Sequence record: PV764603.1
Strand: one strand, 5' to 3'
Length of the DNA stretch: 64,000 nucleotides
The translations under genes and the position numbers were made by a program. The notes below the pieces were generated by a model. The model saw only the letters and a list, made by a program, of their open reading frames with translations. It made no database searches and was not told the origin of the DNA. This document shows, in pieces, positions 7,027-30,851 of this stretch. How positions within the stretch are numbered: position 1 is the first letter of the stretch; each line of letters opens with the position of its first letter.

Positions 7027-7035
7027 CTGTAAATA
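7027..7035 (+). promoter_or_regulatory. CTGTAAATA promoter-like motif
   Basis: intergenic, about 25 nt upstream of the primase start. Confidence 0.6.
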
Positions 7036-9978: not shown

Positions 9979-10158
9979 TTAACGTATGCCGAGTTCCCGG
10001 CGGGCTTTCTTTTCCATCCGCTTCTGCTTACGCTCCAACGACATACGCGAAGGAGGTTTGGCTTTGCGGGGTTCCTCTGAATAGGAAGTGGGTGCAGCGA
10101 CATGCGAGGCAAGAGCCAACGCAACCAAACTACGCTGCAACTTGCGTGACAAGGCCAT
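9979..10158 (-). CDS. small basic protein
   Basis: GGAGGAGG RBS before ATG 10158. Confidence 0.55.
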   Translation of the reverse strand: MALSRKLQRSLVALALASHVAAPTSYSEEPRKAKPPSRMSLERKQKRMEKKARRELGIR

Positions 10159-10492
10159 TAGCCTCCTCCCGATGTTGTTCCTTCCAATCCGCGTAGGCTT
10201 GCACCACGCGGTCGCGCCACTCGGGGCACTGTTCAGGGATCGGCAGTGGATGAGGGCCATGCAGACCGAAGATCACGATGCAGCCACAAGCGTTCTCGTA
10301 CACCCACGCATTCTCATGCTCCATCGCAAACTTTGCATGGCCGTCGGCAAAGCCATACTTGCCACACTTGCAGCGGAAGTCCCACCCGAACTCATGTAGG
10401 GCTTTCTTGCGGCGCTTCTTGAGCGCCTTCACTTCGAGGTGCTCGGTGTAGGTGGTGCGTAGCCATGCTGCAAGCTTAGAGAATCCGCGCAT
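10130..10492 (-). CDS. hypothetical protein, possible Zn binding
   Basis: CKCG...CGC motifs; RBS GGAGGA. Confidence 0.6.
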   Translation of the reverse strand: MRGFSKLAAWLRTTYTEHLEVKALKKRRKKALHEFGWDFRCKCGKYGFADGHAKFAMEHENAWVYENACGCIVIFGLHGPHPLPIPEQCPEWRDRVVQAYADWKEQHREEANGLVTQVAA

Positions 10493-11303
10493 GCTGTTCC
10501 TCCCCTTCAATCAGAGTGCCCAAGTGCTGATGCAGCTTGGTCAGAGTTTCGGTCACGTCGTTGTGCTTGATGGCGATACCGCCCGCCTCCACCCATGCCG
10601 CGCAATTCTTGGTGTGGTCATCAATCAGCAAGTCCAGCGGCGCGTGCATCATGACGCATTTGGTACTGCCACCCGGCACTGGAATAATCATCGTGTCAGG
10701 GCGCATGGTCACCGAGGCATTCAACCAACCACGCTTCTGGATAGCCGTCGGGATGTAGTTCGACTTGGGGCAGCCGGTCAAGAAGTGGTATGGCGTGTGG
10801 CGCAGGGCGTGCAGCAAGTCCTGCGCGTGGGGCATCTTGGGCAGGGCACCGAAGAAGTTCTCGTGGCCACGAACCATCGCCCACTTTTCGTCTTCGGTAA
10901 TCGTGTCATGGTGGACACCAAAGATCAAAGGGAATCCCGTATCAAAGTCAGCCATGACGCCATCCACGTCAACGTTTATCAGCGGCATGCGAACCCGCCG
11001 CATCCGAGACACCACTTGAATGCGATAGTTCACTTCACGCATCCACTCTTCCCGAAGATTCTGTTCGTCATCATCGAAGGCACCAAGGCCCTCTTCTTCG
11101 AGAACGTTGCCCATCCAGCCGTGGAACTCCGGCCAGTTCAAGCCACGATTCTCAAAGCTGAAACTGTGCGAGGTATCGGTCAGCGTGACTTGCCCTAGAG
11201 CGTGGCCCCGATTCTGCATCTTCTGCACAACCTTCATGGCCTGCCCTACGTCCAATGGCAGTTCCATTACAGAACCCGGAGCGGTTTCGTACAGGAACTT
11301 CAT
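10476..11303 (-). CDS. HAD-family 5'(3')-deoxyribonucleotidase with an N-terminal extra domain
   Basis: INVDVDGVMADF motif I, HFLTG, LLIDDHTKNCAAWVEAGG. Confidence 0.85.
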   Translation of the reverse strand: MKFLYETAPGSVMELPLDVGQAMKVVQKMQNRGHALGQVTLTDTSHSFSFENRGLNWPEFHGWMGNVLEEEGLGAFDDDEQNLREEWMREVNYRIQVVSRMRRVRMPLINVDVDGVMADFDTGFPLIFGVHHDTITEDEKWAMVRGHENFFGALPKMPHAQDLLHALRHTPYHFLTGCPKSNYIPTAIQKRGWLNASVTMRPDTMIIPVPGGSTKCVMMHAPLDLLIDDHTKNCAAWVEAGGIAIKHNDVTETLTKLHQHLGTLIEGEEQHARIL

Positions 11304-11983
11304 TTCGCATCCTCCTTGCACACCTGCGCTCCCTTGATCTTGAAGCTGACCCAACTCCAACGCAGATGGACACGTTGATAGTCCGGGTCGTTGCGCTCAC
11401 GCATGGCCTTGAGGACAGTCCGCAGCTGGGCCTTGAGCACGTTGAGGTTGGTCGGGGTTTCGTACTTGGTGGTCTTGCTGCCAGCGCACTGGTCCGGCGT
11501 ACCGAAGCGATCACCAAGGAACACCACAGGGACGCCATCAATGGTGTGGATGAACACCGTGTACGTGGCGTAGTCAGGGAGAGCCTTGGCCTTGTTTACC
11601 ATCGGGCCCTGCACACCCAACACCGCGGGACGACTTGCGAGGTCCACCGACTTGACGATGGCTGTGCGCAGGCTGTGCAACTTGCGCCACTTGTTCTGCA
11701 AGTGCGGTAGCGCTATGCCACCAAGGCCAGCGGCTGTCTTGGAAGCAGTGATGGCCGTATCGAGTTCCGCGATCTTCTTGTTGAGTGCAGCGAACACCTT
11801 GGTAAGGATCGGACCGGCCACGCACCACATTAAGACGCTGCCCGAGCCTCGTCGTGCCCTCGGAATCGTATGCGTGTAGGTTTTGGGTTTCGGGACGAGG
11901 CGTTTGAACCAAGCTTCATCCTGTACGTGGTACAGACGTGACGCAGGCAAATGGTATTCCCGGTGTGCGATTTCCTTAGCCAT
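11300..11983 (-). CDS. hypothetical protein (227 aa)
   Basis: long coupled ORF. Confidence 0.7.
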   Translation of the reverse strand: MAKEIAHREYHLPASRLYHVQDEAWFKRLVPKPKTYTHTIPRARRGSGSVLMWCVAGPILTKVFAALNKKIAELDTAITASKTAAGLGGIALPHLQNKWRKLHSLRTAIVKSVDLASRPAVLGVQGPMVNKAKALPDYATYTVFIHTIDGVPVVFLGDRFGTPDQCAGSKTTKYETPTNLNVLKAQLRTVLKAMRERNDPDYQRVHLRWSWVSFKIKGAQVCKEDAK

Positions 11984-11984
11984 G

Positions 11985-12590
11985 TTAGGCTCCTTGAATG
12001 TTGATGATCCCGTTGTACTTGGTAGGTACTTGCATTGGAGCAGCTTGGGTTAGCATGAAAGGGCTGTGATAACGCTGCTTGCCGTACTTCGCTTCGTGGC
12101 CGAGTATCTCAGCGCGCACGCGGAGAATATTCTCCGCGACTGACTCGGGCGTCTTTGCACGCAGTAGATGCTCTGCACTAGGACCAACCGGAGAGAACTG
12201 AGGTACTACAGGTGCGAACCTTGCAACAGATTCCACCGCAGCCTGCACCCGAAGCGCAGCCTCAGCAGGAGGTTCGCCCCTACCCTCGGGTAGCCGCTCC
12301 TTCAAATCCTTCCACGTCTGCGAGTTGACCATGATGACGCTATCGCCGTGCATGCGATAGAACTGCCCATCCCCAATCAGCGGCGTGGTGCCATGTTTCT
12401 TGAGCCACTTCTTGTTGACCCGAGGGGCGTAACAACGCCCCTCGTGCCACTTGCGGGGACGCACAGCTTTCTTGGGCATGCGCGTGTCGTTGATGACGAT
12501 GCGTACACCAAAGATGGTTTGCTGGAGTGCGTCAATTTGTTGCAAGGGTCTTCCCTCCCATGTCTTGTCTGAGACGTTCGTTGAACCCAC
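11985..12590 (-). CDS. hypothetical protein (201 aa)
   Basis: ORF with GGAGG RBS and GTG start. Confidence 0.65.
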   Translation of the reverse strand: MGSTNVSDKTWEGRPLQQIDALQQTIFGVRIVINDTRMPKKAVRPRKWHEGRCYAPRVNKKWLKKHGTTPLIGDGQFYRMHGDSVIMVNSQTWKDLKERLPEGRGEPPAEAALRVQAAVESVARFAPVVPQFSPVGPSAEHLLRAKTPESVAENILRVRAEILGHEAKYGKQRYHSPFMLTQAAPMQVPTKYNGIINIQGA

Positions 12591-13578
12591 TGCCTCCTTC
12601 GGGCAGCTTCAAGAACAAGCCAGCAAGGTTGCAGTATTCAGTGACGTTGCCCGAGGCAAGCAACTCGTCCAGCAGCACGTCGTTGGTATGGTTGTACCCT
12701 CGCTGTGCAAGCCAGTTCGAGAAGTCGGCATCGAACTTGCCAGTAATCAAGTCGATGTAGTACAAGCGCTTACCCGCATATCGCTCTCGCAGTTGCGACA
12801 GGGCGAACCCCGTCTCTGGAGTATCGCGCACGATCATGTTGGGGTGCTCGGTCTTCACCAAGTCGATTTTCTGAATCACGTTGCGATATACGATCTGCCC
12901 ATCGGTGTCGCGTTCTTCGTGCATCGCCTTCCGGCTAGCCGTGGTGTGATGGTATTGCAGGTTCGTACACGCGTTGGTGATGGTCCGCTTCATGATGTTG
13001 AGCATGTGCTTGGCGTTTTCGATCCGAGGGTAGGTCTTGTAGACTCCCTGAATCGCGGAAAGGACTAGCTCATCAATCAACTCATCACGCTGGCTTTGTC
13101 CTGCCGATACCACGAACGCCAAGTCCTTACCGACCTTGTACGCTGCATACTTCTTGGCATGCGGCAGGTTTGACACAATGGCTCGTTGAAGCTTACCCCA
13201 CGACACCGGCAAGTAGCCTTGGTCAAGGAAGCCCTCGAACACTTCGGATAATGAGTCTCGGCGGCGGACCCATCGTTTCAGTTTTACGTCACGCACACGC
13301 AAATCGCTTTCAGCGAAAACACGATCAAGGTTGCCCTTGGCGTAGGCTCGGAAGAGGAACGTCTTGGCTTGGTACATGCGTCCGGTACTCTGCAACGCCA
13401 TGCGATAGTCAATGATGCGTTCCCCAGCAAGCGGTCGCATTATCTTGGTGAACTCACTCACGTTCATTCCGTTGAACGCATAGAGCAGCGTCGTCTCGAC
13501 CGCTGCACACTTGTCCCTCTTGTTGAGGGACAAGTAAGTCTCCGGAAAATGCGTACTCAATAGTTCAGTGATAATCAT
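12532..13578 (-). CDS. putative divergent RNA polymerase sigma factor (region-2-like, gp55-like)
   Basis: DELIDELVLSAIQGVYKTYP...IMKRTITNACTN resembles sigma region 2.2-2.4; weak similarity judged by eye. Confidence 0.45.
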   Translation of the reverse strand: MIITELLSTHFPETYLSLNKRDKCAAVETTLLYAFNGMNVSEFTKIMRPLAGERIIDYRMALQSTGRMYQAKTFLFRAYAKGNLDRVFAESDLRVRDVKLKRWVRRRDSLSEVFEGFLDQGYLPVSWGKLQRAIVSNLPHAKKYAAYKVGKDLAFVVSAGQSQRDELIDELVLSAIQGVYKTYPRIENAKHMLNIMKRTITNACTNLQYHHTTASRKAMHEERDTDGQIVYRNVIQKIDLVKTEHPNMIVRDTPETGFALSQLRERYAGKRLYYIDLITGKFDADFSNWLAQRGYNHTNDVLLDELLASGNVTEYCNLAGLFLKLPEGGSGFNERLRQDMGGKTLATN

Positions 13579-13593
13579 CCCGAAGTCCCCTCC

Positions 13594-14493
13594 TTAGACT
13601 TCGTTCAGGATGAGTCGCCCACCTGCCCCCTTCTTGATGTTCGATTTCTTCGCCTTGCGTTCCAGCAATTCCTTTGTTTCGCGTACAGACATTTCCGACC
13701 CCTTCTTCTTTTTCTTCTTGCGAGAATGGAAGATAATGCCTTCATCCTCGATGCCGCGTTCAAACCATTCCTTCGGAACCGTGTCGATGGTGGGCACGTC
13801 ATCATCGACAAGGGGGCGTGCTCTCCACGGGCGTTCCAGCAGAGCAGCAATCGCCTTGCGAGTCTCCTTCGGCATCTTGGTCTTGCCTTCCGCTTCCAAG
13901 CGCGTCCGACGCTTGCGGAAGTTCTTGCCGCCGACTACGTACTCCGGCAGTCTACCGCCCTCCTTAGCAGTCAGGGAAATGGTGTAGGGATCAGCCTTTC
14001 CCGGTTCACTTGGACTGATATACACTTCGATGCTGTCGCCATGATTCACAGCACCGATCACGTACCCCTTGTAGTATTGGTCGATGTAATGCAGGTCATA
14101 CTTTTCCATCTGCGTCCGAATCTCACGCGGCATGCCGAGCGTCGGAGGAAGATAGACGTACAGTGGTTGCCCCAAACGCAGGCCGACTTTCTTTAGCGGC
14201 TCCTGTCGCAGCAGGGAGTAAGCGAGGATGCGCAGACTTGCACCCTCCATCCCTTTTGCAGCATTCGCCAATGCAGCAAACAACTCGGTACTGCCATCCG
14301 CCTGCTTGATGCGCGTCAAGTCAGGGGTGTAGAACTTGCAAGCCTTCGCAAAAGGCAGAACGCCCGTCTTGCTGCACTTGTCAGCATAGTGCGGACTAGC
14401 CGGTCCTTTGAAATGCAAGCACTCACTGCACTTGAGGCCAATGGCGAGCTTGTTGGAATGGACTGGCGTGACTGCCTTAGAATTGGTCGGCAT
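13594..14493 (-). CDS. hypothetical protein with an N-terminal Cys cluster
   Basis: CSECLHF...C...C; 299-aa ORF. Confidence 0.7.
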   Translation of the reverse strand: MPTNSKAVTPVHSNKLAIGLKCSECLHFKGPASPHYADKCSKTGVLPFAKACKFYTPDLTRIKQADGSTELFAALANAAKGMEGASLRILAYSLLRQEPLKKVGLRLGQPLYVYLPPTLGMPREIRTQMEKYDLHYIDQYYKGYVIGAVNHGDSIEVYISPSEPGKADPYTISLTAKEGGRLPEYVVGGKNFRKRRTRLEAEGKTKMPKETRKAIAALLERPWRARPLVDDDVPTIDTVPKEWFERGIEDEGIIFHSRKKKKKKGSEMSVRETKELLERKAKKSNIKKGAGGRLILNEV

Positions 14494-14504
14494 CGAAGGT
14501 ACTC

Positions 14505-14984
14505 CTAAAGTCGTGATAAATAACGGGCGTGCAACTCATGTATCGCGTGGACCAATGCTTGTTCCTGATTCCGGTATTCCCAATAGTCGCGCAAATCCTT
14601 TAGCTTGTCGCTGGTATCCTTGGTAAAGTTCGTGTGGAACTTGACCTTCTTGTTAGGATCATTCTCAGTCAACTCGCGCGCGGCTTTAATGCGCCCGGCA
14701 AGGTAAAGCGCAACAGAGATAGCCCTCTTTGCTTTGGCTACAGGTAGAGCGCGAATGCGATCATCCTCGGCCAGCATCGTAGGGACTACTCTTCCCTTGC
14801 CTAGCTGGTAACTCAGAGTGTGCACAAGGCTATGGTCAATAGCGCACAGCGAAACTTGCGGACCATCCACGCCACCATAAGCGCATGGAATGATGTGATG
14901 CAGTTCCAAGCTGGACTGAGTGCCACACACAAAGCATGGCCCATCATTGATATAGCCCGGTGTCAGTACAAGCTGTTTACTCAT
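14505..14984 (-). CDS. HNH endonuclease
   Basis: CFVCG...LELHHIIP...GG...LCAIDHSLVH. Confidence 0.8.
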   Translation of the reverse strand: MSKQLVLTPGYINDGPCFVCGTQSSLELHHIIPCAYGGVDGPQVSLCAIDHSLVHTLSYQLGKGRVVPTMLAEDDRIRALPVAKAKRAISVALYLAGRIKAARELTENDPNKKVKFHTNFTKDTSDKLKDLRDYWEYRNQEQALVHAIHELHARYLSRL

Positions 14985-14985
14985 G

Positions 14986-15843
14986 TTAGCGGAAAGGGAA
15001 GCCCCAATCGTTGAGGACAGCTTCACCGATCAGTCGGTTCATGCGATTCAACAGCGCGTGCGGTACAGCCCAGAAATACACGTAACCCTTGCTCGAAGCG
15101 ACGCGACGGCCTGCACCCAGCACCAACTCGTCGCCCATGATCGAGTAACGCTCGTTGCTCTTCTGCCCGACAATGGCAGCGATCTGCTTGGCGTAGTGGG
15201 TCAGGTTGGCAGGCAGGTCTTCATGCTTGAGGTTGATACCGATCACCAGCTGGTTGCCCAGCACGGTGTAGAAGCCCGACTGACCTTCGATGCGGAAGCC
15301 TGCCTTGGCAAGCTGCTCGGTGGTGACCACACCTTCAAACTGAGGAACGATCGGAAGGTGACGGATGATGAAGGGATCGTCCTTGGCCTTGGCGTCCTTG
15401 GGTAGAGTGGAAGCGTACTTGCTGGTCTTGCCGAACAGGCGCTCGTTGACTTGGGTGCCGTCTGGATCATGGGCACGCATCGAAGCCTGCTCCTTCTTGA
15501 GCGCGAAGCGATTCACGGTGGCGATGGCTTCGTCCAGCGAGGCGGTCAGCATCGTCACGCCTTCCTGCACGTCCGACAGTTCCACGTCACCCGATTCCAT
15601 GCCATCCATCAGCGAGGTGGCGATGTTGATGCTGGTGACCACGCTGGTCTTACCCGAAGCGTTCGGCATCGCCGACGGTGCAGCCTTGGAGAATTGACTT
15701 TCGACCGCGCGCAGGCTCGGGACCATAGATGCCAGCGCTTGATGGTGCAAGCTGCCTGCGCTAATCAGGTCGCCGGCCTTCGGCGCAGGTACGGCGTGGC
15801 GCAGAGCGCTTAGGGTGGTAGCGATTTCTTGCAAGGTGCTCAT
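14986..15843 (-). CDS. hypothetical protein (285 aa)
   Basis: long ORF with phage-like codon usage. Confidence 0.75.
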   Translation of the reverse strand: MSTLQEIATTLSALRHAVPAPKAGDLISAGSLHHQALASMVPSLRAVESQFSKAAPSAMPNASGKTSVVTSINIATSLMDGMESGDVELSDVQEGVTMLTASLDEAIATVNRFALKKEQASMRAHDPDGTQVNERLFGKTSKYASTLPKDAKAKDDPFIIRHLPIVPQFEGVVTTEQLAKAGFRIEGQSGFYTVLGNQLVIGINLKHEDLPANLTHYAKQIAAIVGQKSNERYSIMGDELVLGAGRRVASSKGYVYFWAVPHALLNRMNRLIGEAVLNDWGFPFR

Positions 15844-16148
15844 TGTGCATTACCTTTGTTAGAGCGGGCCGAAGACGATTCGTTCTTGACGCGGACTTCC
15901 GACAGCGGCACTTTACCAAAGATGGTTTTGCCGCTTGGTGCAATCACTTCAACGGTTAGCCCGTTGAGTTGGGGACGCAGGTGGCCACGCACAAAGCGTT
16001 CGACCCACAGCGAATTTCGGGAGGCGTTGGGCAGCGCCTCGTATCGCTTCACCTGCGTTTTGGCAGGTGCGCGCACGATGATCTTGATGCCCTCGGCACG
16101 GAGCACTTGACGCTCAAACTCCAATACCGAGACTAGCTCTTCCGACAT
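15840..16148 (-). CDS. hypothetical protein (about 102 aa)
   Basis: ORF from ATG 16148 with a GGAG RBS. Confidence 0.6.
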   Translation of the reverse strand: MSEELVSVLEFERQVLRAEGIKIIVRAPAKTQVKRYEALPNASRNSLWVERFVRGHLRPQLNGLTVEVIAPSGKTIFGKVPLSEVRVKNESSSARSNKGNAQ

Positions 16149-16197
16149 GTAAACAGTTCTCCATTTGTGCGCATCCTTTTCGGGCCTTGAGAAACAC

Positions 16198-16234
16198 GAA
16201 AAGGCAGGAGGGACCGAAGTCCCTCCCACCTGTC
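16198..16234 (-). terminator. intrinsic terminator
   Basis: GGGAGGGAC-TTCG-GTCCCTCC stem followed by a T-rich tail on the minus strand. Confidence 0.8.
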
Positions 16235-16237
16235 TCG

Positions 16238-16759
16238 TTAAGCAATAGGATACTTGACGCCTTTGGATTCGAGAACCCTGCGAAACGTCCGACCAAGTTT
16301 AATATCAGTAACGTTGAACCTACTCACGTTAAACTCCTGGGCTATTTCACAATTCCTATGGCCAGCTTGAAGTCGCTTTGCAATCTTGTACGCAAGTTTG
16401 TTAGTCATGACCACATCGCTCCGGTCTTCACCTATAGCACGTAGATCATTGTCAAACGCGTGCACTACGTTGGCCGAGGGCGTGACGTACTCAAGGTTGC
16501 TCACGTGATTGTGAGCCTTGATTCCGTCTTTGTGGTTGACTACCTGCCCTTTAGGACGCTTGCCAATCCACACCTCTGCCACCATAGAGTGTACCTTTAC
16601 CGTTTTCGGTCCAGACACCAGCTGCAAGTCAACCCCTAAATGACCCGAGCCTGTAGCGGCAGGGCGAAGCACCCTGCCGCGTAGCCCGAGGACTTTACCG
16701 CACGCACTGACCTTGTAGCCAGTGCGCCGGTAGGGACGGAACTCAATGCGCTTGCGCAT
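16238..16759 (-). CDS. HNH homing endonuclease (NUMOD4/HNH_3-like with C-terminal HTH)
   Basis: VHSMVAEVWIG...VVNHKDGIKAHNHVSNLEYVTPSAN; true start ATG 16759. Confidence 0.88.
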   Translation of the reverse strand: MRKRIEFRPYRRTGYKVSACGKVLGLRGRVLRPAATGSGHLGVDLQLVSGPKTVKVHSMVAEVWIGKRPKGQVVNHKDGIKAHNHVSNLEYVTPSANVVHAFDNDLRAIGEDRSDVVMTNKLAYKIAKRLQAGHRNCEIAQEFNVSRFNVTDIKLGRTFRRVLESKGVKYPIA

Positions 16760-16784
16760 CGTCTTGCCCTTAGAGTCCAGAAGA

Positions 16785-17460
16785 TTACTCTTCGTCGTCC
16801 TCTTCATCTTCTTCGTCTTCCTCTTCCTCGTCTTCTTCCTCTTCTTCTTCTTCTTCCTCTTCCTCGTCGTCTTCCTCTTCCTCGTCGTCTTCCTCTTCCT
16901 CTTCCTCGTCTTCTTCTTCTTCCTCGTCTTCTTCTTCTTCTTCTTCCTCTTCTTCGTCTTCTTCCTCTTCCTCGTCTTCTTCCTCTTCCTCTTCTTCTTC
17001 GTCTTCTTCCTCTTCCTCATCCTTCTTGGACTTCTTGCCAGCAGCCTTCTTGCCACCCTTGGCCGGCTTCTCTTCCTCCTCGTCTTCCTCGTCCTCTTCC
17101 TCGGCGTTCATCAGCTCCGCGATCTGCTCCTTGATTTCGTCGATCTGCGCTTGCAGCGACTCCAGAGACAGTTCCGACTTCTTGCCCTTACCCTTGGCAG
17201 CGGCCTTCGGCGCAGCCTTGGCTGCCTTCTTGCCACCCTTGGCCGGCTTCTCTTCTTCCTCTTCTTCTTCTTCTTCCTCTTCCTCGTCGTCTTCCTCTTC
17301 CTCTTCCTCGTCTTCTTCTTCTTCCTCGTCTTCTTCTTCTTCCTCGTCTTCGTACTCTTCGTCTTCGTCGTCACCCTTCACCGACTTCTTGCCACCCTTG
17401 GCCGGCTTCTTGGCAGCGGCCTTCTTGCCACCCTTGGCCGGCTTCTCTTCCTCGGCGTCA
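16785..17460 (-). repeat. GAA/GAG/GAC low-complexity coding repeat with four KPAKGGKK repeat units
   Basis: repeated TTCTTGCCACCCTTGGCCGGCTTC blocks and TTC/CTC/GTC triplet runs on the + strand. Confidence 0.9.
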
Positions 17461-18182
17461 CCGCCAAAGGTGTAGATGCCCTCGTCGGCCAGATAGGTCA
17501 GGAAGCCCTTGAGGCCATCCTTGCTGTTGATCGGATCCAGCGTCGGCAGCAGCTTGGCGATGGCAGCACCGTTGCTGTGCTTCTTCACGTCAATGTCGCC
17601 GTCCTCGTAGATTTCCGAGGCCCACTTGTTGTGAGCGACAGCGATGGCCTTGGCCTGCTTGTCGGTCAGCTTCTTGGCTTCCTTCTGGATGTCCGCGATT
17701 TGCAGGCCATTGAAGACGGCGCGGCCAGCAGCGGCCTTGGTGTCCTTCTTGGCAGCGGCCTTGGCCGGAGCGGACTTGCCCTTACCCTTCGCAGCCGGCT
17801 TACCCTTGCCGCCCTTACCCTTGGCCGGAGCCTTGGCGCTCGACTTCTTGCTCACGACCTTGGCCGTCTTCTTGGTGGTGGCCTTGGTGTCCTTCTTCGG
17901 GGCAGCCTTGGCAGCGGTCTTCTTGGCGACCGGCTTCTTCGCAGCAGCCTTCGGCGCAGCCTTGGTGGTCTTGGCGGCAGCCTTCTTGGCCGGAGCAGCC
18001 TTGGTGGTCTTCGCAGCAGCCTTCTTCACGGCCGGCTTCTTGGCGGCAGCCTTCGGCGCAGCCTTGGTGGCCGGAGCCTTCTTCGCAGCGGTCTTCTTCA
18101 CGGTGGTCTTTTCCGATTTGCCCTTGGCAGCAGCCTTGGTCTTGGTGGCGGCGGTCTTGGTGGTCTTCTTGGTGGTAGCCAT
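16785..18182 (-). CDS. histone H1-like Lys/Ala-rich protein with very long poly-Asp/Glu tracts (465 aa)
   Basis: N-terminal AAKK/KKAPA repeats, about 90-aa non-repetitive core, three acidic tracts separated by EEEKPAKGGKKA repeats. Confidence 0.85.
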   Translation of the reverse strand: MATTKKTTKTAATKTKAAAKGKSEKTTVKKTAAKKAPATKAAPKAAAKKPAVKKAAAKTTKAAPAKKAAAKTTKAAPKAAAKKPVAKKTAAKAAPKKDTKATTKKTAKVVSKKSSAKAPAKGKGGKGKPAAKGKGKSAPAKAAAKKDTKAAAGRAVFNGLQIADIQKEAKKLTDKQAKAIAVAHNKWASEIYEDGDIDVKKHSNGAAIAKLLPTLDPINSKDGLKGFLTYLADEGIYTFGGDAEEEKPAKGGKKAAAKKPAKGGKKSVKGDDEDEEYEDEEEEEDEEEEEDEEEEEEDDEEEEEEEEEEEEKPAKGGKKAAKAAPKAAAKGKGKKSELSLESLQAQIDEIKEQIAELMNAEEEDEEDEEEEKPAKGGKKAAGKKSKKDEEEEEDEEEEEEEEDEEEEEDEEEEEEEEEDEEEEEDEEEEEEDDEEEEDDEEEEEEEEEEEDEEEEDEEDEEDDEE

Positions 18183-18314
18183 GTGAAACAGTTTCCTTAT
18201 AAGGATGAATGGTTGGGTAGTACGTACATGGTTGGCCGTTCGGCGAACTCGTCCATGCCCGAATTCGCTAAAGTGTGCAGCGCCGTCCGGCCTAGCTCGC
18301 CGCTGCATATCCCT

Positions 18315-18323
18315 TATTTACAG
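18315..18323 (-). promoter_or_regulatory. CTGTAAATA promoter-like motif
   Basis: upstream of the leader of the H1-like gene. Confidence 0.6.
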
Positions 18324-18325
18324 GA

Positions 18326-18595
18326 TTACTCGCCAGCGTACTTTCGCTGGAACAGGTACGCCTCAACATCGCCGATGGTCACCCACTTCTCAGCGTCCTC
18401 ATCCGACACTTCGATCTGGAAGGTTTCCTCCAGTTCCATCAGCAGTTCGATCAAGTCGAGCGAATCTGCCCCGAGGTCAGAGACAAGGCTGGCGGTGGGG
18501 AGAACCTCTTCTGGCTTGACGCCGAGGAACTCCACTACCGCGTCGGTCACCCGCTTATGCAGGGTGGGGTAAAGGGGACTTTGTTCGATGCTCAT
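18326..18595 (-). CDS. acpP: acyl carrier protein
   Basis: DLGADSLDLIELLMELEETFQIEVSDEDAEK; phosphopantetheine Ser in DSL. Confidence 0.95.
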   Translation of the reverse strand: MSIEQSPLYPTLHKRVTDAVVEFLGVKPEEVLPTASLVSDLGADSLDLIELLMELEETFQIEVSDEDAEKWVTIGDVEAYLFQRKYAGE

Positions 18596-18620
18596 AAGTA
18601 CCGTCCTGTGGATGTGTCAG

Positions 18621-18629
18621 TATTTACAG
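18621..18629 (-). promoter_or_regulatory. CTGTAAATA promoter-like motif
   Basis: 26 nt upstream of the ACP start. Confidence 0.6.
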
Positions 18630-18671
18630 TATTGAGGTGGCCGGAGCCACCTCAAGTTGCCCCAAGTGGGG

Positions 18672-19652
18672 TCAATCGTCCAAGCTCTCGAAGAGATCCG
18701 CGAGGTTGGCTCGGCTGACCACCCGGACCAGCTGGTCCTGCTGGATGAGGGCGTTAGTGAACACCGGATTGCCTTGGCGATTGCGGCGCACTTCGTACAT
18801 GATCTTGAAGTTGTCCCACCGGACTGCCCTGCCTTGCGTCTTGATGCCTCGGTCAGCCTCGGTCACAAGGGCTCGCGTGTTGGCACTGCCGTCCGTCCAC
18901 TTGACCTCCACCACGCAGCCCGGTTGCACGTCTGCAAACTTGACACCGACCGGGTAGCCACCGTTGACCTTCACGTTGTTCATCTTGAAGGCCGTGTTGG
19001 AGTGGTGCACAATGTAGTCGGCGTTGAAGTGCTTGGTCCGGGGCTTGCGTACCTCAAAGTGGTCCGGGTCCTCAAGCATGAAGCCAACCACGTCTGCCGC
19101 AATGTAGGCAGTGACGTAATCCACGTCAGGAGCCGACTCGTCCAGTGTGCCAACTTGGTGGCAGATGACGCCTCCGATCCGAACCTCGCGGCGCGAATCA
19201 AGGATGACGGCAAAGGAACCGTCGCCTTGAAGGAGGGTGAACGCGTCCCGCAGGCGACGGATGACCGGCGTGGTGTCATGAAGCATTTCCTTGCCACTCC
19301 GCTTCCACTCCTTGATGAACTTCTCCGAAGGGGTCAGCGGAGCCTTGGGCAGCTTGGCGACCGTGGCCGATTGGGTCGGCATCTGCTCCGGGTGCAGGGT
19401 AAAGACGACGAGGAACGCGTAGTTGGAGGCGATCACTTCGACCGCCTTGACCTTCTCCTTGCGACGGCGCATGACGCGCAGGACCGTCTTACGCACTGCC
19501 GCCTTATCCGTGATGGTGTGGGGGAAGAAGATCCGAATCTCATTCTGCTTGTGCAGGGTGGTCTGTCGGACGCCCTTCAACGGCAGGTGGAAAGCCTCGC
19601 ACAGGTCGGACTTGATGAAGGTGTGATTGAAGCCGGTGATTGCGTTGCTCAT
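18672..19652 (-). CDS. hypothetical protein (326 aa)
   Basis: ORF from ATG 19652 with an AAGGA RBS. Confidence 0.75.
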   Translation of the reverse strand: MSNAITGFNHTFIKSDLCEAFHLPLKGVRQTTLHKQNEIRIFFPHTITDKAAVRKTVLRVMRRRKEKVKAVEVIASNYAFLVVFTLHPEQMPTQSATVAKLPKAPLTPSEKFIKEWKRSGKEMLHDTTPVIRRLRDAFTLLQGDGSFAVILDSRREVRIGGVICHQVGTLDESAPDVDYVTAYIAADVVGFMLEDPDHFEVRKPRTKHFNADYIVHHSNTAFKMNNVKVNGGYPVGVKFADVQPGCVVEVKWTDGSANTRALVTEADRGIKTQGRAVRWDNFKIMYEVRRNRQGNPVFTNALIQQDQLVRVVSRANLADLFESLDD

Positions 19653-19687
19653 GTGTGATCCTTCATTGGTCGGAGTGTTCCGGGAAA

Positions 19688-19836
19688 TTTGCCAAGTGTG
19701 CTTGGCGAATCTGGCGTAGCGTGCAGGCACAGGGCATGACTCTACACCACTATCATACACCACCCCTAGCCGGGTGTCAAACCACCCCTGTCAGCCGTTC
19801 AGGTTCCGTTCAGGTTCGATTTGGGCACACTTGGCA
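19688..19836 (-). promoter_or_regulatory. promoter module copy 1: TTGACA-17-TATGAT with upstream CAGGGGTGG and tandem CTGAACG boxes
   Basis: -35 at 19775-19780, -10 at 19752-19757, CTGAACG at 19796-19802 and 19807-19813. Confidence 0.85.
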
Positions 19837-19843
19837 GAATCTC

Positions 19844-20275
19844 TTATTCCACAATCTCCATTTCTAGGCGTTCCTGCCACGTCTTCGGGCGGAGGGTCAG
19901 GGAGTGTGACCAGTGGCCTAGCCTCATTCGTGCCACCTCGTTAGCACCACACCCGTAAGGCACAGGCAGCGAGTTGACCCATTGGTGGAATCCCTGGGAC
20001 GACTTGGCTGACTTGCCTGCCAGCTGCCTTGCCGTGAGATTGATTCCGGCGTTGAATGGCAGTGGGCAAATCCGGGTGCGATTGATGTGGTCAAGTAGCA
20101 CAGTCGCAGGCATTGTCTCAACGCAATTCTGGCATGGTCGGAATCCTGTACCCACGAACTCTTCTGGAATCTGCTCCGTTTCGCACCAGCCCTCCATGCG
20201 ACTGAATGCACGCACGCAGCAACTCGGATAGCCAAACCACAAGCCAAACAGAACGTACTGAGTAGACAATTCCAT
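19844..20275 (-). CDS. hypothetical protein (143 aa)
   Basis: GYPSCC and CQNC motifs. Confidence 0.65.
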   Translation of the reverse strand: MELSTQYVLFGLWFGYPSCCVRAFSRMEGWCETEQIPEEFVGTGFRPCQNCVETMPATVLLDHINRTRICPLPFNAGINLTARQLAGKSAKSSQGFHQWVNSLPVPYGCGANEVARMRLGHWSHSLTLRPKTWQERLEMEIVE

Positions 20276-20298
20276 TTCGGTTCCCCTAGGTAGTGGCC

Positions 20299-21807
20299 TC
20301 AGATTGAGGCCACCATTGTATCAATGTCAGCCACGATCTTGTCGGCTGGCTTCTTGAGCCACTTATCCAGCTGAGTCAGGAATGCCTTCGTCTCCTTGAT
20401 CTTCTCCACAAGCTTCTCGGCTTCCAGAGCCTTCAAGCTGCGAATCTGACGACTCAGGATCGTGTCCACCTGCTCGGCCGTGATCTTGAGGCCCTTCATC
20501 AACACCTCTTCGGTGTTCTTCGCTTTCAGCGCCTTGACGATCAAGTCGATGTTCTTGCATGCCAGCAGCATCAGTTCCTGCAACGCCAACTGCTCTTGCG
20601 TCTTGCCCTTCCGATAATTCAGGGCCTTGACCTCAAGGTCGATGCGCCACTTGGTCCACTTCTTGAAGAAGTCCAGCACGCTGGTCTGCAACAGTTCAGC
20701 TGACGGCGTTTCGGTCTCGTAGTCGAAGCTCTTTTCGATGGCGTTGATTCGGAAGCTGCATCGCTTGGAGAAGTGCTTCTCGATCACTTCAAGCGCCTTG
20801 GCCTCAACCATCCGAACACCAATGTCCTGCTTGAGAACCACTTGAATCAGGAAGGGGTCTTTCCGACTCGTCTCATCCGTACAGGACTTGACACGATCAT
20901 CCTCAGCGACTCGCCCGATCAGCTTCTCCACGTCAGTCTGCGGAGGAATGGACGTGATGTTGATCGTCCGATTCTTGGCGTCGATGGTGTAGTCCGAAGT
21001 GACGATGGCACGGCCAGCACCAGTGGACAGCAGCTGACGCCACTCCTTCCGGATTTCCTTCTGCTCGTTGCTGCCCTTGTTCAGGGTGCAGGGAGTGGAG
21101 CCGTGTCGGGCGTAGTTGATCTTGAGTGCCTTGCTGCAATCCTTCACGTCGATAGGCTGCTTCCGAAGTGCCTTCTTCGTCAGTTCGATGACGCCCTTCA
21201 TGCCAAAGGCAGGCACCCAACCCGCCGTGCCCACCGCGATGTTGCCCGAACTACCATTCAACAGCAGGTTCGGCAGCAGCGACGGGAGGATCATTGGCTC
21301 TTGATCCTTACCATCATAGTTCGGCACCATGTCCGAAACTTCAAGGTGGTCGGCCGAGAAGAAGACGTTGTAGCCATACTTACTCAACTTCAACTCGGTG
21401 TATCGCATCGCCGCAGCTTCGTCCGTCATCGAACCAAAGTTGCCTTGGCCGATGAAGTACGGTTCCGAAGCATTCACCATCTGCACCACCGAGCCATAGG
21501 CTGCGGTGTCACCGTGCGGATGGTACTTACCGATCACGTCACCAACCAGTCGCGCAGACTTCTTGGTGCCACCGCTCGGAGCCATGCCCATCTTGTATGC
21601 CGCGTAGAGGATACGGCGCTGCACAGGCAGCAGCCCATCGCGGTAGTCCGGGAAGGCACGATCCTCAATGACCGCACGGCCATAGGTGAACATGCACTCG
21701 TCGCCGTGGGTGGCCAAGTCAATATCGACTACCACGTTGTTGCCCGAAGCCTTGACCTTACCCGACTTCACTTTCTTGCCTTTCACTTTCTTGGCTACCT
21801 TAGCCAT
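20299..21807 (-). CDS. type IIA topoisomerase subunit A (GyrA/ParC-like, no C-terminal pinwheel)
   Basis: DGLLPVQRRIL, KKSARLVGDVIGKYHPHGD, AAAMRYTE catalytic Tyr. Confidence 0.95.
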   Translation of the reverse strand: MAKVAKKVKGKKVKSGKVKASGNNVVVDIDLATHGDECMFTYGRAVIEDRAFPDYRDGLLPVQRRILYAAYKMGMAPSGGTKKSARLVGDVIGKYHPHGDTAAYGSVVQMVNASEPYFIGQGNFGSMTDEAAAMRYTELKLSKYGYNVFFSADHLEVSDMVPNYDGKDQEPMILPSLLPNLLLNGSSGNIAVGTAGWVPAFGMKGVIELTKKALRKQPIDVKDCSKALKINYARHGSTPCTLNKGSNEQKEIRKEWRQLLSTGAGRAIVTSDYTIDAKNRTINITSIPPQTDVEKLIGRVAEDDRVKSCTDETSRKDPFLIQVVLKQDIGVRMVEAKALEVIEKHFSKRCSFRINAIEKSFDYETETPSAELLQTSVLDFFKKWTKWRIDLEVKALNYRKGKTQEQLALQELMLLACKNIDLIVKALKAKNTEEVLMKGLKITAEQVDTILSRQIRSLKALEAEKLVEKIKETKAFLTQLDKWLKKPADKIVADIDTMVASI

Positions 21808-22006
21808 CGTTACGTGCTCCCAAATGGCTCATGGCGAGATACCCGAATGGGTATCCCTCCGTCTCGTGATACATGCAAGCCGCGTTGACTCGGAACTCGC
21901 TGCCATCAGTGAAGGTCAGTTGGACAGCCTTTAGCTCGCCGTCCTCCCGAAACTCTTCCGCCTTGGCAATCGTCTTGCCTGCCAGCAGTGCTTGAATGTC
22001 CATCAC
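21800..22006 (-). CDS. hypothetical protein (68 aa) between the topoisomerase subunits
   Basis: overlaps both neighbours by 4-8 nt. Confidence 0.6.
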   Translation of the reverse strand: MMDIQALLAGKTIAKAEEFREDGELKAVQLTFTDGSEFRVNAACMYHETEGYPFGYLAMSHLGARNDG

Positions 22007-23895
22007 GGAATCCCCAGCAGGCGTTTTCTGGCGGTCACGTCGTCGGCCATCAGCAACGTAAACCGGGAGAGCGACTTTGCATCCTTGAGCGTGATGCGCT
22101 TGAGCTTACGGGTGGTGGCATCGAACGCTGCCTCCCGCAGCATTTCCGGAGCCGCCTCACCCCACCCCTTGAGGTGGTTGACCTTGTTGCGGTCTGCGCC
22201 CTTCGGCATCTTGGCCCACAGTTCCTTACGCGACTTCGCCATGTAATAGGTCTTGGTCTTGGCGTCGTAGTAAGTGTACTCCGGACTGTCCACTGTGTAG
22301 ATCAGACCACGCTCAAACACACCCGGCACGTACTTGACCAGCAGGGCAATCACAAGCGTTTCGATGTGGCGACCGTCAACGTCCGCGTCGGTCAGCATAA
22401 TCATCTTGCCGGTACGCAGATGGTCAAGCGGATTCTTCTTGGTCGGATCGAAGCCCAGCGCACGTAGGATGAACAACACTTCGTCACTGTTGAAGGCCGC
22501 GTTAATGTCCTTCTGCTTCATGACATTCAGAATCTTGCCGCGCAACGGCAGGATTTCCTGATGCGTCTTATCGCGGGCCTTCTTCGCCGTACCGCCTGCC
22601 GAGTCACCTTCCACCAAGAACGTCTCACGCTTATGCGGAGCGCAGTTGGCGCTGACGAACTTGGCAGGCATGTTGTTGCCCTTCTTCTTGCCCGAGTTCA
22701 GCGCAGCGATGGCCTTCTTTGAGGCAGTGAACTCCGCCTTAGCTCCACGCACAGCCGCTGCCTTCTCGCACAGCGTCTTGGCCAGAGTCTTGTTTTGTGC
22801 GAAGAACTCATCTAGCTTCTTCTGCAACGGCGTGGGCAGCATGTCGTTGACCCGGCCGTCAACCAGCTGTGCCTTGTCCTGACTGCTGAATCGGGGAGCA
22901 TCGAGCTTGGCGTTGATGATGCCTACTGCACCTTCGAGCACGTCGTCCTTTCGGAAGGACTGCTTGCTGTTGGCGTACTTGACGATGGCATTGTAGAGAG
23001 ACTGTTTCAGAATGTCTACATGCAGACCACCATTCTTGTTGTGGATCGAGTTGGTGTATGCCTCGATGTTGTCGCCTTCGGCATCTGTGAACGCCAGCGC
23101 AATCTCAGCAGGGAACCCCTTCTCGGTCAGGACGAACGGCTTGCCAGTGACAGTAGCCTTGAGCTTCTTGCACTGCGCACCGAGGAAGTCCTTGACACCA
23201 TCCTTGAACTTCCACTGCTTCTTCTTGCCATCAACGATGAGCGTGACTTCCAGCCCGGCGTTGAGGTAAGCAGCAAGTTCACACCACTGCTCGAAGTAGT
23301 CGATCGGAATCTTCGAGCCCTTGTCGAAATACTTGAGGTCCGGAATCCAGTGGATCGCCGTGCCCTTCTTGACCTTGACCCCGAACGGCAACTTGGGGGC
23401 AGTCGCCTTCTTGACCGGCTTCTTCTCCACGCCATCGGCGTACTGAGTATGCCACCACACCTTGTCTCGGAAGGTGTGAACCTCAAAGTGCTTCGACAGC
23501 GCATTGGTAGCCTTGAGGCCAACGCCGTGCGTACCACCCGCGTTCTCGTAAGCACCCTTGTCAAACTTTGCGCCTGCATGCAGACGACTGACCAGCGACT
23601 TGAGTGCCGACTCCTTGACCTTGCGGCCTTCGATTTCCAGCGTGTGAGGCTTGACTGGCATACCACCTGCCGAGTCAATGGTCCAGAATTTCCACGCCTT
23701 CGTGTCGATCAACAGGGTGACAGAAGCGCCACGGCCTGCCTTGAATTCGTCAACGATGTTGTCCAGCGGCTCGCGGCCGATGGTGCCGATACCCGTTGAA
23801 TCTGTAAGGCCGATATACATACCGGCTTTGGCCTGAACGGCTTTCAAGCCAATCAGGACTTTTACTTGCTTCTCTGAATAGCTGGCTTTCGCCAC
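22003..23895 (-). CDS. type IIA topoisomerase subunit B (GyrB/ParE-like)
   Basis: EPLDNIVDE, GTHGVG GHKL motifs; VEGDSAGG, PLRGKILN, TDADVDG Toprim; GTG start after GAGGA. Confidence 0.95.
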   Translation of the reverse strand: MAKASYSEKQVKVLIGLKAVQAKAGMYIGLTDSTGIGTIGREPLDNIVDEFKAGRGASVTLLIDTKAWKFWTIDSAGGMPVKPHTLEIEGRKVKESALKSLVSRLHAGAKFDKGAYENAGGTHGVGLKATNALSKHFEVHTFRDKVWWHTQYADGVEKKPVKKATAPKLPFGVKVKKGTAIHWIPDLKYFDKGSKIPIDYFEQWCELAAYLNAGLEVTLIVDGKKKQWKFKDGVKDFLGAQCKKLKATVTGKPFVLTEKGFPAEIALAFTDAEGDNIEAYTNSIHNKNGGLHVDILKQSLYNAIVKYANSKQSFRKDDVLEGAVGIINAKLDAPRFSSQDKAQLVDGRVNDMLPTPLQKKLDEFFAQNKTLAKTLCEKAAAVRGAKAEFTASKKAIAALNSGKKKGNNMPAKFVSANCAPHKRETFLVEGDSAGGTAKKARDKTHQEILPLRGKILNVMKQKDINAAFNSDEVLFILRALGFDPTKKNPLDHLRTGKMIMLTDADVDGRHIETLVIALLVKYVPGVFERGLIYTVDSPEYTYYDAKTKTYYMAKSRKELWAKMPKGADRNKVNHLKGWGEAAPEMLREAAFDATTRKLKRITLKDAKSLSRFTLLMADDVTARKRLLGIP

Positions 23896-23927
23896 GTCGG
23901 TTCCTCTTGGTTGAACGTCATACCCTA

Positions 23928-23936
23928 TATTTACAG
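23928..23936 (-). promoter_or_regulatory. CTGTAAATA promoter-like motif
   Basis: 33 nt upstream of the topoisomerase B start. Confidence 0.6.
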
Positions 23937-23988
23937 GATGCCTCAATGTGCAGAAAGCCCTGCGATTTCTCACAGGGCTCTTCCGGTC

Positions 23989-24675
23989 TTACTCCGCTGC
24001 GCTCCCCTGCTGGCGACGCAGCCACTTCTGCCGTTCCACGATTACGGGATGCACCATATCCCCTTCCACAAGTTCGTAGATATGGTACACCCACACCGCG
24101 TCGATGGCCTTGCCATCCGAACGGTTCTCCGCCGTCTCGTCATAGAGATACTCGAACTGCGGTTCACGTGTACCAAGGTACGCGCCCCACTTGTGCCAGC
24201 GCCAACCACCACTCGGCTCCTGCTCGTCCCTGCGCATTTCAACCATGCTGACGCAGAAGTACCGATTCTCCAGAGCGTCGATGATGGGGAACAGTTCAAA
24301 CAGCTGTTCCGGGGTGTCCACCACACCATAGCAGTTGAGGTAGCGCCTCTTCGGTTCTCCGTCCTCTCCCACGTCGTCGTAGATGCCTGCGTTGTGCTCA
24401 GGGAACTCCGGATAGTCAAGATCGAACTTGCGCTTGCCGTCCTGCTTGGAGCGGTTGATTTCATGATCGAAGTTGAGGTCGCCCGTGAACACACCCGGCA
24501 GCGTTGCGTGCTCGTACACGAATGGGGCACGGTAGGAACCATCCTCCAGCTTCTGGAACTGATCCAGATGCTCATGGAAACTTTCGTTGTGGGGATTGGC
24601 ACCGATGGGGTACTGGTCGCGCAGACCCTGCAACCATTCGGCGGTATAGGTGATGAGCTTCGGAGTAACGAGCAT
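23989..24675 (-). CDS. hypothetical protein
   Basis: YGVVD...GGWRWHKWGAYLG...EYLYDE; RBS AAGGA. Confidence 0.75.
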   Translation of the reverse strand: MLVTPKLITYTAEWLQGLRDQYPIGANPHNESFHEHLDQFQKLEDGSYRAPFVYEHATLPGVFTGDLNFDHEINRSKQDGKRKFDLDYPEFPEHNAGIYDDVGEDGEPKRRYLNCYGVVDTPEQLFELFPIIDALENRYFCVSMVEMRRDEQEPSGGWRWHKWGAYLGTREPQFEYLYDETAENRSDGKAIDAVWVYHIYELVEGDMVHPVIVERQKWLRRQQGSAAE

Positions 24676-24685
24676 TTCAATTCCT

Positions 24686-24877
24686 TTATCGTAGTTGTGC
24701 AGTGTGCTCAATGCGTTCACGCAGCTTGTCGGTGTCGAACGTCTGCTCCATCAGCAGCTTGTTGACCCACAGCTGGTACTCTGTTCGGCCGTCTACGTCA
24801 CGCTTCTTGATGACGTAGCTCTTGCCGTTGTGCGGCGCCACCTGTTCGGTGACAATCTCCCATGTTACTCCTGCCAT
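24686..24877 (-). CDS. hypothetical protein (63 aa)
   Basis: short ORF overlapping the E1 stop. Confidence 0.55.
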   Translation of the reverse strand: MAGVTWEIVTEQVAPHNGKSYVIKKRDVDGRTEYQLWVNKLLMEQTFDTDKLRERIEHTAQLR

Positions 24878-25548
24878 GTTACGCTGTGCATTCCCCATTC
24901 TTCACCCACGCTTGTCACCACCGTGTTAGGTGTCGGGCGGCCCATGACGAAATTCATGAACTGCCAGATCATCTGTGACGCGACAATCTGCGCCGTAGCT
25001 CCGACACTGAGGGTTGCCCCACAAGCCGCGCGCTCTACATTGGCGTCGTCGTCATCGAACAGGCCACCAATGTAATTAGTGCGTTGCCATTCCTTGCTGC
25101 GATCAAGCAGGAACGAGATTGCATCCCGGGCTCCCATGCGTCCATCCAGAAACGCACCACCCTCACACGGCAAGTAGTTCTCCGCGAAGGCACGGCGCGA
25201 TGCCATGTTGTCCACGCATACGAACACATATGGAGTGGCCTCAAACCTGGGCTTATTGAGGCGGCGAGGACACGCGCCCACTCGCGTGTCCGAAACTTGA
25301 CGCAGGCGATCCACCAAGGCAACAGCCTTGTTCGTCCCCACGTCATCGGGACCGTACAGGCATTGGTTCGGCAGGTTGTGGGATTCCACCACGTCATCAT
25401 CATAGACAACGAACGGTACACCGATCTTTGACAACTGCAACGCTACCGCGCTGCCCAAGGCCCCTGCCCCGACAACCACCGCAGGCGTGCGCTCAGTGGC
25501 CTTACTCTTGCTCAGGTCGAAGATACCGGTCAATCGAATTTGATCCAT
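24865..25548 (-). CDS. E1-like / ThiF-family adenylyltransferase
   Basis: GAGALG, DDDVVESHNLPNQ, NKA, VCVDN, DGRMG, and a candidate catalytic Cys in ERAACG; no Zn CxxC pairs. Confidence 0.92.
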   Translation of the reverse strand: MDQIRLTGIFDLSKSKATERTPAVVVGAGALGSAVALQLSKIGVPFVVYDDDVVESHNLPNQCLYGPDDVGTNKAVALVDRLRQVSDTRVGACPRRLNKPRFEATPYVFVCVDNMASRRAFAENYLPCEGGAFLDGRMGARDAISFLLDRSKEWQRTNYIGGLFDDDDANVERAACGATLSVGATAQIVASQMIWQFMNFVMGRPTPNTVVTSVGEEWGMHSVTWQE

Positions 25549-25560
25549 CGTTAGTGCTCC

Positions 25561-28239: not shown

Positions 28240-28271
28240 CGTCGCCTTTTCGGTAGTCCTGAATGTACGAA

Positions 28272-28301
28272 AGGCCCGAGCGTCTTTCGACGCCCGAGCC
28301 T
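28272..28301 (-). terminator. 13-bp GNRA-loop hairpin with a weak U-tract (possible leaky terminator)
   Basis: AGGCTCGGGCGTC-GAAA-GACGCTCGGGCCT-TTC on the minus strand. Confidence 0.65.
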
Positions 28302-30844: not shown

Positions 30845-30851
30845 TATCGCC

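Follow-up and report, generated by a model that had tools for sequence, protein, structure and literature searches.

The gene described here lies at 16785-18182 on the minus strand of the window, by which we mean the whole 64,000-nucleotide (nt) stretch of sequence record PV764603.1 that was analysed (window coordinate = record coordinate - 62000; positions are those of the window unless marked as record). The record is the 229,154-bp genome of Xanthomonas phage PhiXhv-16, a jumbophage of X. hortorum pv. vitians; megablast matched positions 10000-30000 of the window to it with 100% identity. The gene encodes a protein of 465 amino acids (aa) in which charge is sorted into blocks: a lysine- and alanine-rich N-terminal arm resembling a histone H1 tail, a unique core, and a tail of three acidic tracts interleaved with basic spacers. 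Our leading, though tentative, explanation is that this largely disordered protein is abundant, associates with DNA as an architectural component during the replication phase, and uses its acidic tail to buffer its own basic arm. A DNA-linked role in replication would fit the class of its promoter, its predicted expression level and the similar tail on the single-stranded DNA-binding protein (SSB) of the phage. In GenBank the product is labelled ‘hypothetical protein’ (coding sequence (CDS) XYR93443.1), and the gene was not discussed in the paper describing PhiXhv-16 and its relatives as a new jumbophage genus without relatives (PMC13340338).

Anatomy of the charge-block protein

The coding sequence comprises the following parts, numbered from the start codon at 18182.

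16785-18182 (-): charge-block CDS, 465 aa; stop codon 16785-16787
17727-18182 (-): basic arm resembling a histone H1 tail, residues 1-152, net +47; AAKK/KAAP/AKKP repeats, irregular
17460-17726 (-): unique core, residues 153-241 (89 aa), net charge 0, non-repetitive; predicted all-helical at low confidence
17373-17459 (-): basic spacer 1, residues 242-270, net +6; two KPAKGGKK units; invariant in orthologues
17250-17372 (-): acidic tract 1, residues 271-311, net -40; 40/41 D/E; length differs among genomes
17178-17249 (-): basic spacer 2, residues 312-335, net +10; one KPAKGGKK unit
17103-17177 (-): amphipathic helix, residues 336-360 (25 aa), net -5; L/I spacing 3-4-3-4-3; invariant
17070-17102 (-): acidic tract 2, residues 361-371, net -11; 11/11 D/E
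17022-17069 (-): basic spacer 3, residues 372-387, net +8; one KPAKGGKK unit
16788-17021 (-): acidic tract 3, residues 388-465, net -78; 78/78 D/E; GAA/GAG/GAC periodic repeats

A first-pass annotation, made from the letters alone, had described about 150 aa of AAKK/KKAP repeats, a unique core of roughly 90 aa and then three long D/E tracts separated by repeat units. The basic region was confirmed as residues 1-152 (A 33%, K 33%, T 14%, P 7%), and the DNA coding for it contains imperfect tandem repeats of 15-39 nt. The core also held up, being non-repetitive and without a homologue in any search. Three acidic tracts do exist, but the middle one is short (11 aa, against 41 and 78), and while KPAKGGKK units do occur in the spacers, two of the four precede the first tract. 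The block layout of arm, core and tracts was correct except that the 25-aa heptad helix between tracts 1 and 2 had been missed.

Not a single K or R occurs within the acidic tracts of 41, 11 and 78 residues. The whole protein contains 91 basic residues (K:R 90:1) and 154 D+E, giving a net charge of -63, and only 8 of its 465 residues are aromatic. Kappa was 0.61, whereas 500 shuffles averaged 0.17 and did not exceed 0.23. The same 24 coding nt occur in all four KPAKGGKK units, against an expectation of 0, which suggests that the module was duplicated or that gene conversion took place.

The core had no useful alignment for structure prediction, since the orthologues are all identical. Two single-sequence AlphaFold2 runs returned mean predicted local distance difference test (pLDDT) values of 50 and 44, with 44-66 in the core. 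The sole element predicted with confidence was the helix at residues 336-360 (pLDDT 72-90), which is a candidate short coiled coil, and the acidic tracts were predicted to be unstructured (pLDDT below 50). A structure search on the core had been proposed by the first-pass annotation; it came back empty, as Foldseek of the predicted structure against PDB found nothing below E 2.8.

Gene, conservation and transcription unit

The charge-block open reading frame (ORF) was compared among five genomes of 98-100% nucleotide identity (PhiXhv-16, PhiXhv-12, PhiXhv-15, Ep026 and Ep032). Its frame is kept in four of the five despite 8 indel events of 1-4 codons, all of them in-frame and confined to the low-complexity tracts; the PhiXhv-15 copy carries one frameshift relative to the others. 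The core is identical in all five, spacers and helix are invariant, and only tract lengths drift, acidic tract 3 (residues 388-465) being the part that differs most.

Codon use is strongly biased (ACC 92%, CCG 100%, GCC+GCT 87%, GGY 100%, against 42%, 44%, 49% and 81% in 24 other genes of the window) and leans towards the codon preferences of the major head protein. The codon adaptation index (CAI), for which the major head protein and the virion protein next to it served as reference set, was 0.80 for the charge-block ORF and 0.75 for its non-repetitive core alone, compared to 0.77-0.79 for the major head protein, 0.60 for the N-domain of the SSB and a median of 0.36 (standard deviation 0.11) across 294 ORFs. 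Even with the GenBank extension considered below included, only four ORFs exceeded the charge-block ORF, and two of these were the reference genes themselves. The gene is thus probably very highly expressed, at the level of the major head protein. Frame conservation, codon bias and CAI together indicate a real gene. A plus-strand ORF at 16746-18572 (608 aa, F/L-rich) and a K/R-rich alternative frame were both rejected as mirror artefacts of the GAA/GAG repeats.

Several other genes of the non-structural block with raised CAI are orphans, all on the minus strand: 59347-59787 (CAI 0.72), 28319-28741 (0.60) and 35570-36523 (0.585), the last with a K-rich C-terminal tail.

The GenBank CDS starts at 18308, 42 codons upstream of 18182, in PhiXhv-16 and likewise in PhiXhv-12 and -15. 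This start is probably 42 codons too early. The extension (18183-18308, -) has a CAI of 0.18, against 0.80 for the rest, and is rich in arginine, with 8 R among its 42 aa where the other 465 have 1; the start at 18182 therefore appears preferable. The GenBank ATG is 7 nt past the promoter motif, and the extension begins inside the promoter region. A ribosome-binding site (RBS) precedes the start at 18182, and a near-identical RBS-plus-spacer string stands ahead of the next downstream gene (15840-16148). The palindrome CCTTATAAGG across the RBS was discarded, as it has one copy and is not above chance.

The signals around the gene are these.

18315-18323 (-): promoter-like 9-mer CTGTAAATA; the TC ahead of the motif abuts the stop codon of the acyl carrier protein (ACP) gene
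18315-18323, 18621-18629, 23928-23936, 30836-30844, 40019-40027, 53987-53995 (-): copies of CTGTAAATA in the window, usually with ATC ahead
7027-7035 (+): seventh window copy of CTGTAAATA
18183-18314 (-): putative 5' leader, about 132 nt; two local hairpins; contains the GenBank upstream ATG (18308)
18194-18198 (-): RBS AAGGA, 11 nt ahead of the ATG at 18182
16202-16231 (-): intrinsic terminator; 13-bp stem (8 G-C), then T-run; best terminator in 15000-34900
about 16234-16788 (-): insert with HNH homing-endonuclease gene; ORF 16238-16759 (GenBank 16238-16807); Pfam HNH_3, E 1.4e-7
19752-19780 (-): near-consensus sigma-70 promoter, 11/12 matches; probable early class

The claim that the gene has its own promoter motif was upheld, in that CTGTAAATA at 18315-18323 is one of 7 copies in the window, where 0.12 would be expected. 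The first 225 kb of the genome contain 17 copies against an expectation of about 1, and each runs in the direction of the genes around it. A motif search found it in 5 of the 19 intergenic regions of the minus-strand block, and the structural block (142.7-181 kb) holds no copy. Genes behind the motif include those named in GenBank as DnaA-like, primase, topoisomerase II and a DNA polymerase III subunit, as well as the ACP gene and the gene of a second charge-block protein, of 259 aa. We suggest that CTGTAAATA is a middle-type promoter of the phage, because a separate set of near-consensus sigma-70 promoters marks a probable early class. Directly ahead of the charge-block gene no sigma-70 promoter was found. 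Three intergenic regions on the minus strand (19731-19843, 34279-34499 and 43780-44002) share GAACCTGAACG-type repeats, a CAGGGGTGG box and a near-consensus sigma-70 promoter, and are probably early promoters for the host polymerase.

The annotated start falls 14-39 nt past the motif in 11 of the 17 copies, so that the 132 nt at the charge-block gene is unusually long. The leader is invariant in the five genomes. It had been described as structured, which was not supported: a structured leader or riboswitch was rejected, with a folding z of -0.93 against shuffles and no Rfam family.

The HNH insert lies between the charge-block stop codon and the terminator, inside the transcription unit, and has a CAI of 0.26. 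It is present in PhiXhv-16 and -12 and absent from PhiXhv-15 (alignment breakpoint) and Ep032; in Ep026 its absence was judged by an ORF end coordinate identical to that of Ep032. The terminator of Ep032 stands 11 nt past the charge-block stop codon. Since the genomes free of the insert have the terminator right after the stop, the ancestral unit appears to have been monocistronic, consisting of promoter, leader, ORF and terminator.

The gene is located in the minus-strand non-structural block of the genome (70-142 kb), between the ACP and topoisomerase genes. The ACP gene directly upstream (18326-18595, -; PP-binding, E 2.4e-15) has its own CTGTAAATA copy. The closest relatives of topoisomerase II are about 35% identical and come from PaBG, BcepSaruman, phiRSL1 and Erwinia jumbophages, and a neighbouring 352-aa protein had no relative in IMG/VR. 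Further away, 54982-56448 (-) encodes a 488-aa SPFH/Band 7 domain protein (E 1.9e-19, CAI 0.567). Annotated genes elsewhere in the record encode QueD-like (19635-20099), radical-SAM activating-enzyme-like (220000-220899) and GTP cyclohydrolase (223351-224031) proteins, which suggests a 7-deazaguanine DNA modification pathway in PhiXhv-16. A polyamine aminopropyltransferase is annotated at record 47083-47862.

Similar tails and comparison with known systems

All ORFs of the phage were scanned for charge blocks, and two further proteins were found. The first is the SSB (record 16115-17584, outside the window), encoded just past the sigma-factor gene. Its residues 21-248 match phrog_15004 (E 2.9e-57), and the remainder is an enormous tail of poly-D tracts with K/G-rich spacers between them. 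The SSB ORF as annotated has a single frame change and, at its end, an odd stretch rich in M and T. The second, of 259 aa (30017-30796, -), stands behind a CTGTAAATA copy. Its basic arm of 38 aa is followed by a small, beta-rich domain (about 120 aa), and its acidic tail is broken by basic and proline-rich spacers. Its domain is weakly paralogous (E 6e-5) to that of a 146-aa protein (28827-29267, -; CAI 0.745) with a K/G-rich C-terminal tail. Neither of these smaller proteins matched Pfam; the 146-aa protein had no match in PHROGs and the 259-aa protein only a marginal one, to phrog_22271 (E 0.0022). Because the SSB and the 259-aa protein share acidic tracts with K/G spacers, the combination of a DNA-binding or basic part with such a tail is a recurrent design in this phage. 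One of its bearers, the SSB, has a DNA-binding role that is not in doubt.

The core of the charge-block protein is a lineage-restricted orphan. It had no match among Pfam, PHROGs or NCBIfam profiles, and against Pfam the full protein, the arm and the core were all without a match even at E up to 10. Nothing significant was found for the core by phmmer against all PDB chains, and nothing in a word-indexed search of 5.8 billion clusters or in the IMG/VR and JGI metagenomes. A tblastn search of 50,697 phage records recovered only the five near-identical genomes, and a six-frame translation of the phage's own genome contained no paralogue. Exhaustive phmmer over 1.84 billion representatives gave a single marginal match (E 7e-4), a repeat in a 1304-aa protein resembling a tail fibre, which we judged to be chance. 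The arm alone had no match in a HMMER search. The single named match of the full-length search was nucleolin (E 7e-4); it aligned low-complexity segments only and was set aside as composition-driven.

Among phage proteins, one of the closest is Gp44 of Bacillus phage SPO1, a transcription inhibitor which binds RNA polymerase beta and beta' and combines a DNA-binding N-terminal motif, a disordered DNA-mimic domain of 57% D/E without basic residues, and a C-terminal charge-block mosaic (PMC8208478). The charge-block protein likewise has an N-terminal part that is a candidate for DNA binding, disordered D/E tracts free of basic residues and a mosaic of opposite charges. The two D/E-related features of Gp44, the domain free of basic residues and the mosaic charge blocks, are both present here. 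However, Gp44 is a 237-aa protein with a folded 55-aa Xis-like motif, and here the corresponding candidate is a disordered K/A arm of 152 aa; phmmer of the core against all PDB chains detected no Xis-like motif. The acidic content is also about twice that of Gp44 and divided among three tracts, the core is unrelated, and the class of the promoter points to the replication phase rather than to early takeover.

A second SPO1 protein, Gp27, joins a self-associating domain to a lysine-rich disordered DNA-binding region and forms condensates around DNA during infection (PMC13401047). By description, both are modular phage proteins with a lysine-rich disordered region, and the charge-block protein would share with Gp27 a self-associating element, DNA binding by that region and activity on DNA during infection. 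With 155 aa Gp27 is smaller and has no polyacidic tail, and its contact with RNA polymerase is made by a folded C-terminal domain.

The K/A/P tails of AlgP and PhaF bind DNA or polyphosphate and tether cargo to the nucleoid (PMC11894788). Like them, the arm is a long K/A/P low-complexity region with almost no arginine and a variable number of repeats. It differs in being N-terminal and threonine-rich and in its irregular repeats, where AlgP has 54 KPAA-type units. Its composition fits that of AlgP and PhaF, while profile and word searches were empty, and a low-complexity likeness of this kind cannot establish homology. Chlamydial Hc1 (PF07432) also has an H1-like tail (PMC12619734). In Pfam scans of the charge-block protein the Hc1 profile found no match, nor did the winged-helix domain Linker_histone in the full protein, the arm or the core. 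AlgP, PhaF and Hc1 have no acidic tail, unlike the charge-block protein.

Eukaryotic pairings of basic and acidic segments (the nucleolin N-terminus, nucleoplasmin, the HMGB1 tail, and linker histone with prothymosin alpha) likewise interleave acidic tracts with basic segments. In such pairings the polyacid competes with DNA for the basic DNA-binding region. The charge-block protein has no RRM, nucleoplasmin core, HMG box or winged-helix H1 domain (Pfam matched neither RRM domains nor a nucleoplasmin core), and the relation is one of analogy, not homology. The likeness to H1 tails and to nucleolin and nucleoplasmin drawn in the first-pass annotation thus survives at the level of composition, but not of family, as no H1, Hc1, nucleoplasmin or DNA-mimic family matched. 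Nor does the protein resemble folded DNA mimics of the Ocr/ArdA type, since its tracts are homopolymer-like and predicted to be unstructured, and no family or PDB match was found.

Phage SSBs, including the phage's own, also bear an acidic tail, and in the own SSB it again consists of acidic tracts with K/G spacers. That tail is D-rich, however, while the tail of the charge-block protein is E-rich; the DNA-binding candidate here is a disordered arm rather than an SSB domain, and a PHROGs scan of the protein and its pieces gave no match to phrog_15004. As all the testable defining folds are absent, no family membership can be claimed, and the likeness is at most to Gp44, Gp27 and H1-type tails. 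A metagenomic family of charge-block proteins of about 360 aa (P0002-P0005) was also met with. Its members run from a basic N-terminus through a Cys-rich (CxxC...CPFC-like) domain and a long D/E tract to a C-terminal domain, and they end in a basic segment. The core of this family is unrelated to that of the charge-block protein, and no link to the phage SSB was detectable.

Interpretation and alternatives

For the favoured explanation we infer DNA binding, self-competition, multivalency and a time of expression, as follows. The K/A arm of 152 residues would bind DNA without sequence preference, in the manner of H1-type tails, a proposal that the H1-like composition of the arm supports by analogy. 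The 130 acidic residues of the tail, in three tracts, would rival DNA as a binding partner of the arm and of the K/G spacers, which would keep binding reversible and soluble and leave the DNA unaggregated. Such competition is well known from polyacidic tails on DNA-binding modules, as in phage SSB tails and HMGB1, where the tail competes with DNA for the basic surface, and from the linker histone-prothymosin pair, in which the polyacid competes for the basic region. Self-association or contact with a partner, through the helical core and the short heptad helix, would make the protein multivalent. In this way the protein may form a dynamic layer with a polyanionic fringe that coats or bridges either the replicating phage DNA or the host nucleoid.

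Several points weigh against this explanation. The tail could fully mask the arm (net charge -63) and so leave no DNA binding at all, and K/A arms bind RNA and polyphosphate too. No DNA-binding fold was recognisable in the core by PDB phmmer, Pfam or Foldseek. The timing class of CTGTAAATA comes from the genes behind it, and the estimate of expression from codon bias. The invariance of the core carries little weight, because the five genomes are 98-100% identical.

Of the alternatives, the one that survives best, though we consider it unlikely, is a DNA-anchored polyanionic decoy in the style of SPO1 Gp44. Here the arm would park the protein on DNA while the acidic tracts mimic nucleic acid, trapping host RNA polymerase, nucleoid proteins or nucleases in the service of host takeover or counter-defence. 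The same three ingredients as in Gp44 are found in the charge-block protein in more extreme form, and its high predicted abundance would suit a stoichiometric trap. However, the core showed no similarity to PDB chains, which include residues 1-55 of Gp44 (6L6V, according to PMC8208478), and Gp44 is an early takeover gene, whereas the charge-block gene has the CTGTAAATA motif of replication genes and not an early sigma-70 promoter. In addition, the tail outweighs the arm by 130 to about 50, which makes self-neutralisation the simpler reading.

It is somewhat less probable again that the protein is the self-coacervating scaffold of a membraneless compartment for DNA or replication, in which opposite charge blocks and the heptad helix drive phase separation and other phage proteins with matching acidic/K-G tails join as clients. 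Strong charge segregation, a candidate oligomerisation helix and very high predicted abundance all favour such a scaffold, as does the single tail style of three phage proteins including the SSB, and condensates formed around DNA by SPO1 Gp27 during infection are a precedent (PMC13401047). The argument is nevertheless purely compositional. With a net charge of -63, self-coacervation is disfavoured unless a polycation partner takes part; there are hardly any aromatic residues (8/465), and no compartment has been reported for this phage. A replication compartment, as proposed in the first-pass annotation, is speculative. A nucleus of the PhiKZ type is unlikely, judged on GenBank annotation alone, in which a sigma factor is listed and no multisubunit RNA polymerase. 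We regard as more doubtful still the specific proposal of a membraneless, charge-driven DNA compartment in this apparently non-PhiKZ-like jumbo phage, with the charge-block protein as its abundant scaffold and the SSB and the 259-aa protein (30017-30796) recruited through the shared acidic/K-G tail as an address.

A packaged internal virion protein, or a precursor processed by the head protease, is improbable. Inside the capsid, its basic pieces would neutralise the DNA, and its acidic tracts would serve as removable pro-regions. The codon bias matches that seen in the major head protein and in the virion protein next to it, and the phage encodes a head maturation protease. The gene, however, sits in the 70-142 kb non-structural block between the ACP and topoisomerase genes, and the structural module lacks its promoter motif. 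No signal for targeting or cleavage could be recognised, although none could be put to a test. Finally, although tract lengths differ between near-identical genomes, one genome is frameshifted and the core is an orphan, a fast-evolving low-complexity ORF produced by repeat expansion and without specific function is very improbable for a gene that has dedicated promoter, RBS and terminator signals, a codon bias among the strongest of the genome that extends to its non-repetitive core, 8 indels that all keep the frame, invariant spacers and four exact 24-nt units.

Phage proteins that act on DNA by means of disordered charge blocks are a recent discovery, represented by SPO1 Gp44 and Gp27, and proteins of a histone-like, disordered or condensate-forming kind go unmentioned in a 2026 review of jumbo phages. 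The charge-block protein is an extreme and clean case, probably a very abundant one, with its long H1-like arm, its 130 acidic residues and its invariant spacers, and it comes from a new jumbophage genus under development for the biocontrol of lettuce leaf spot. If it does coat or compartmentalise DNA, we would learn from it by what means a large phage that lacks a protein-shell nucleus can manage or shield its genome, and the tail style shared with the SSB would point to an electrostatic code used throughout the phage. Should it prove to be merely a soluble polyampholyte, it would still be a useful natural model for self-competing polyelectrolyte proteins.

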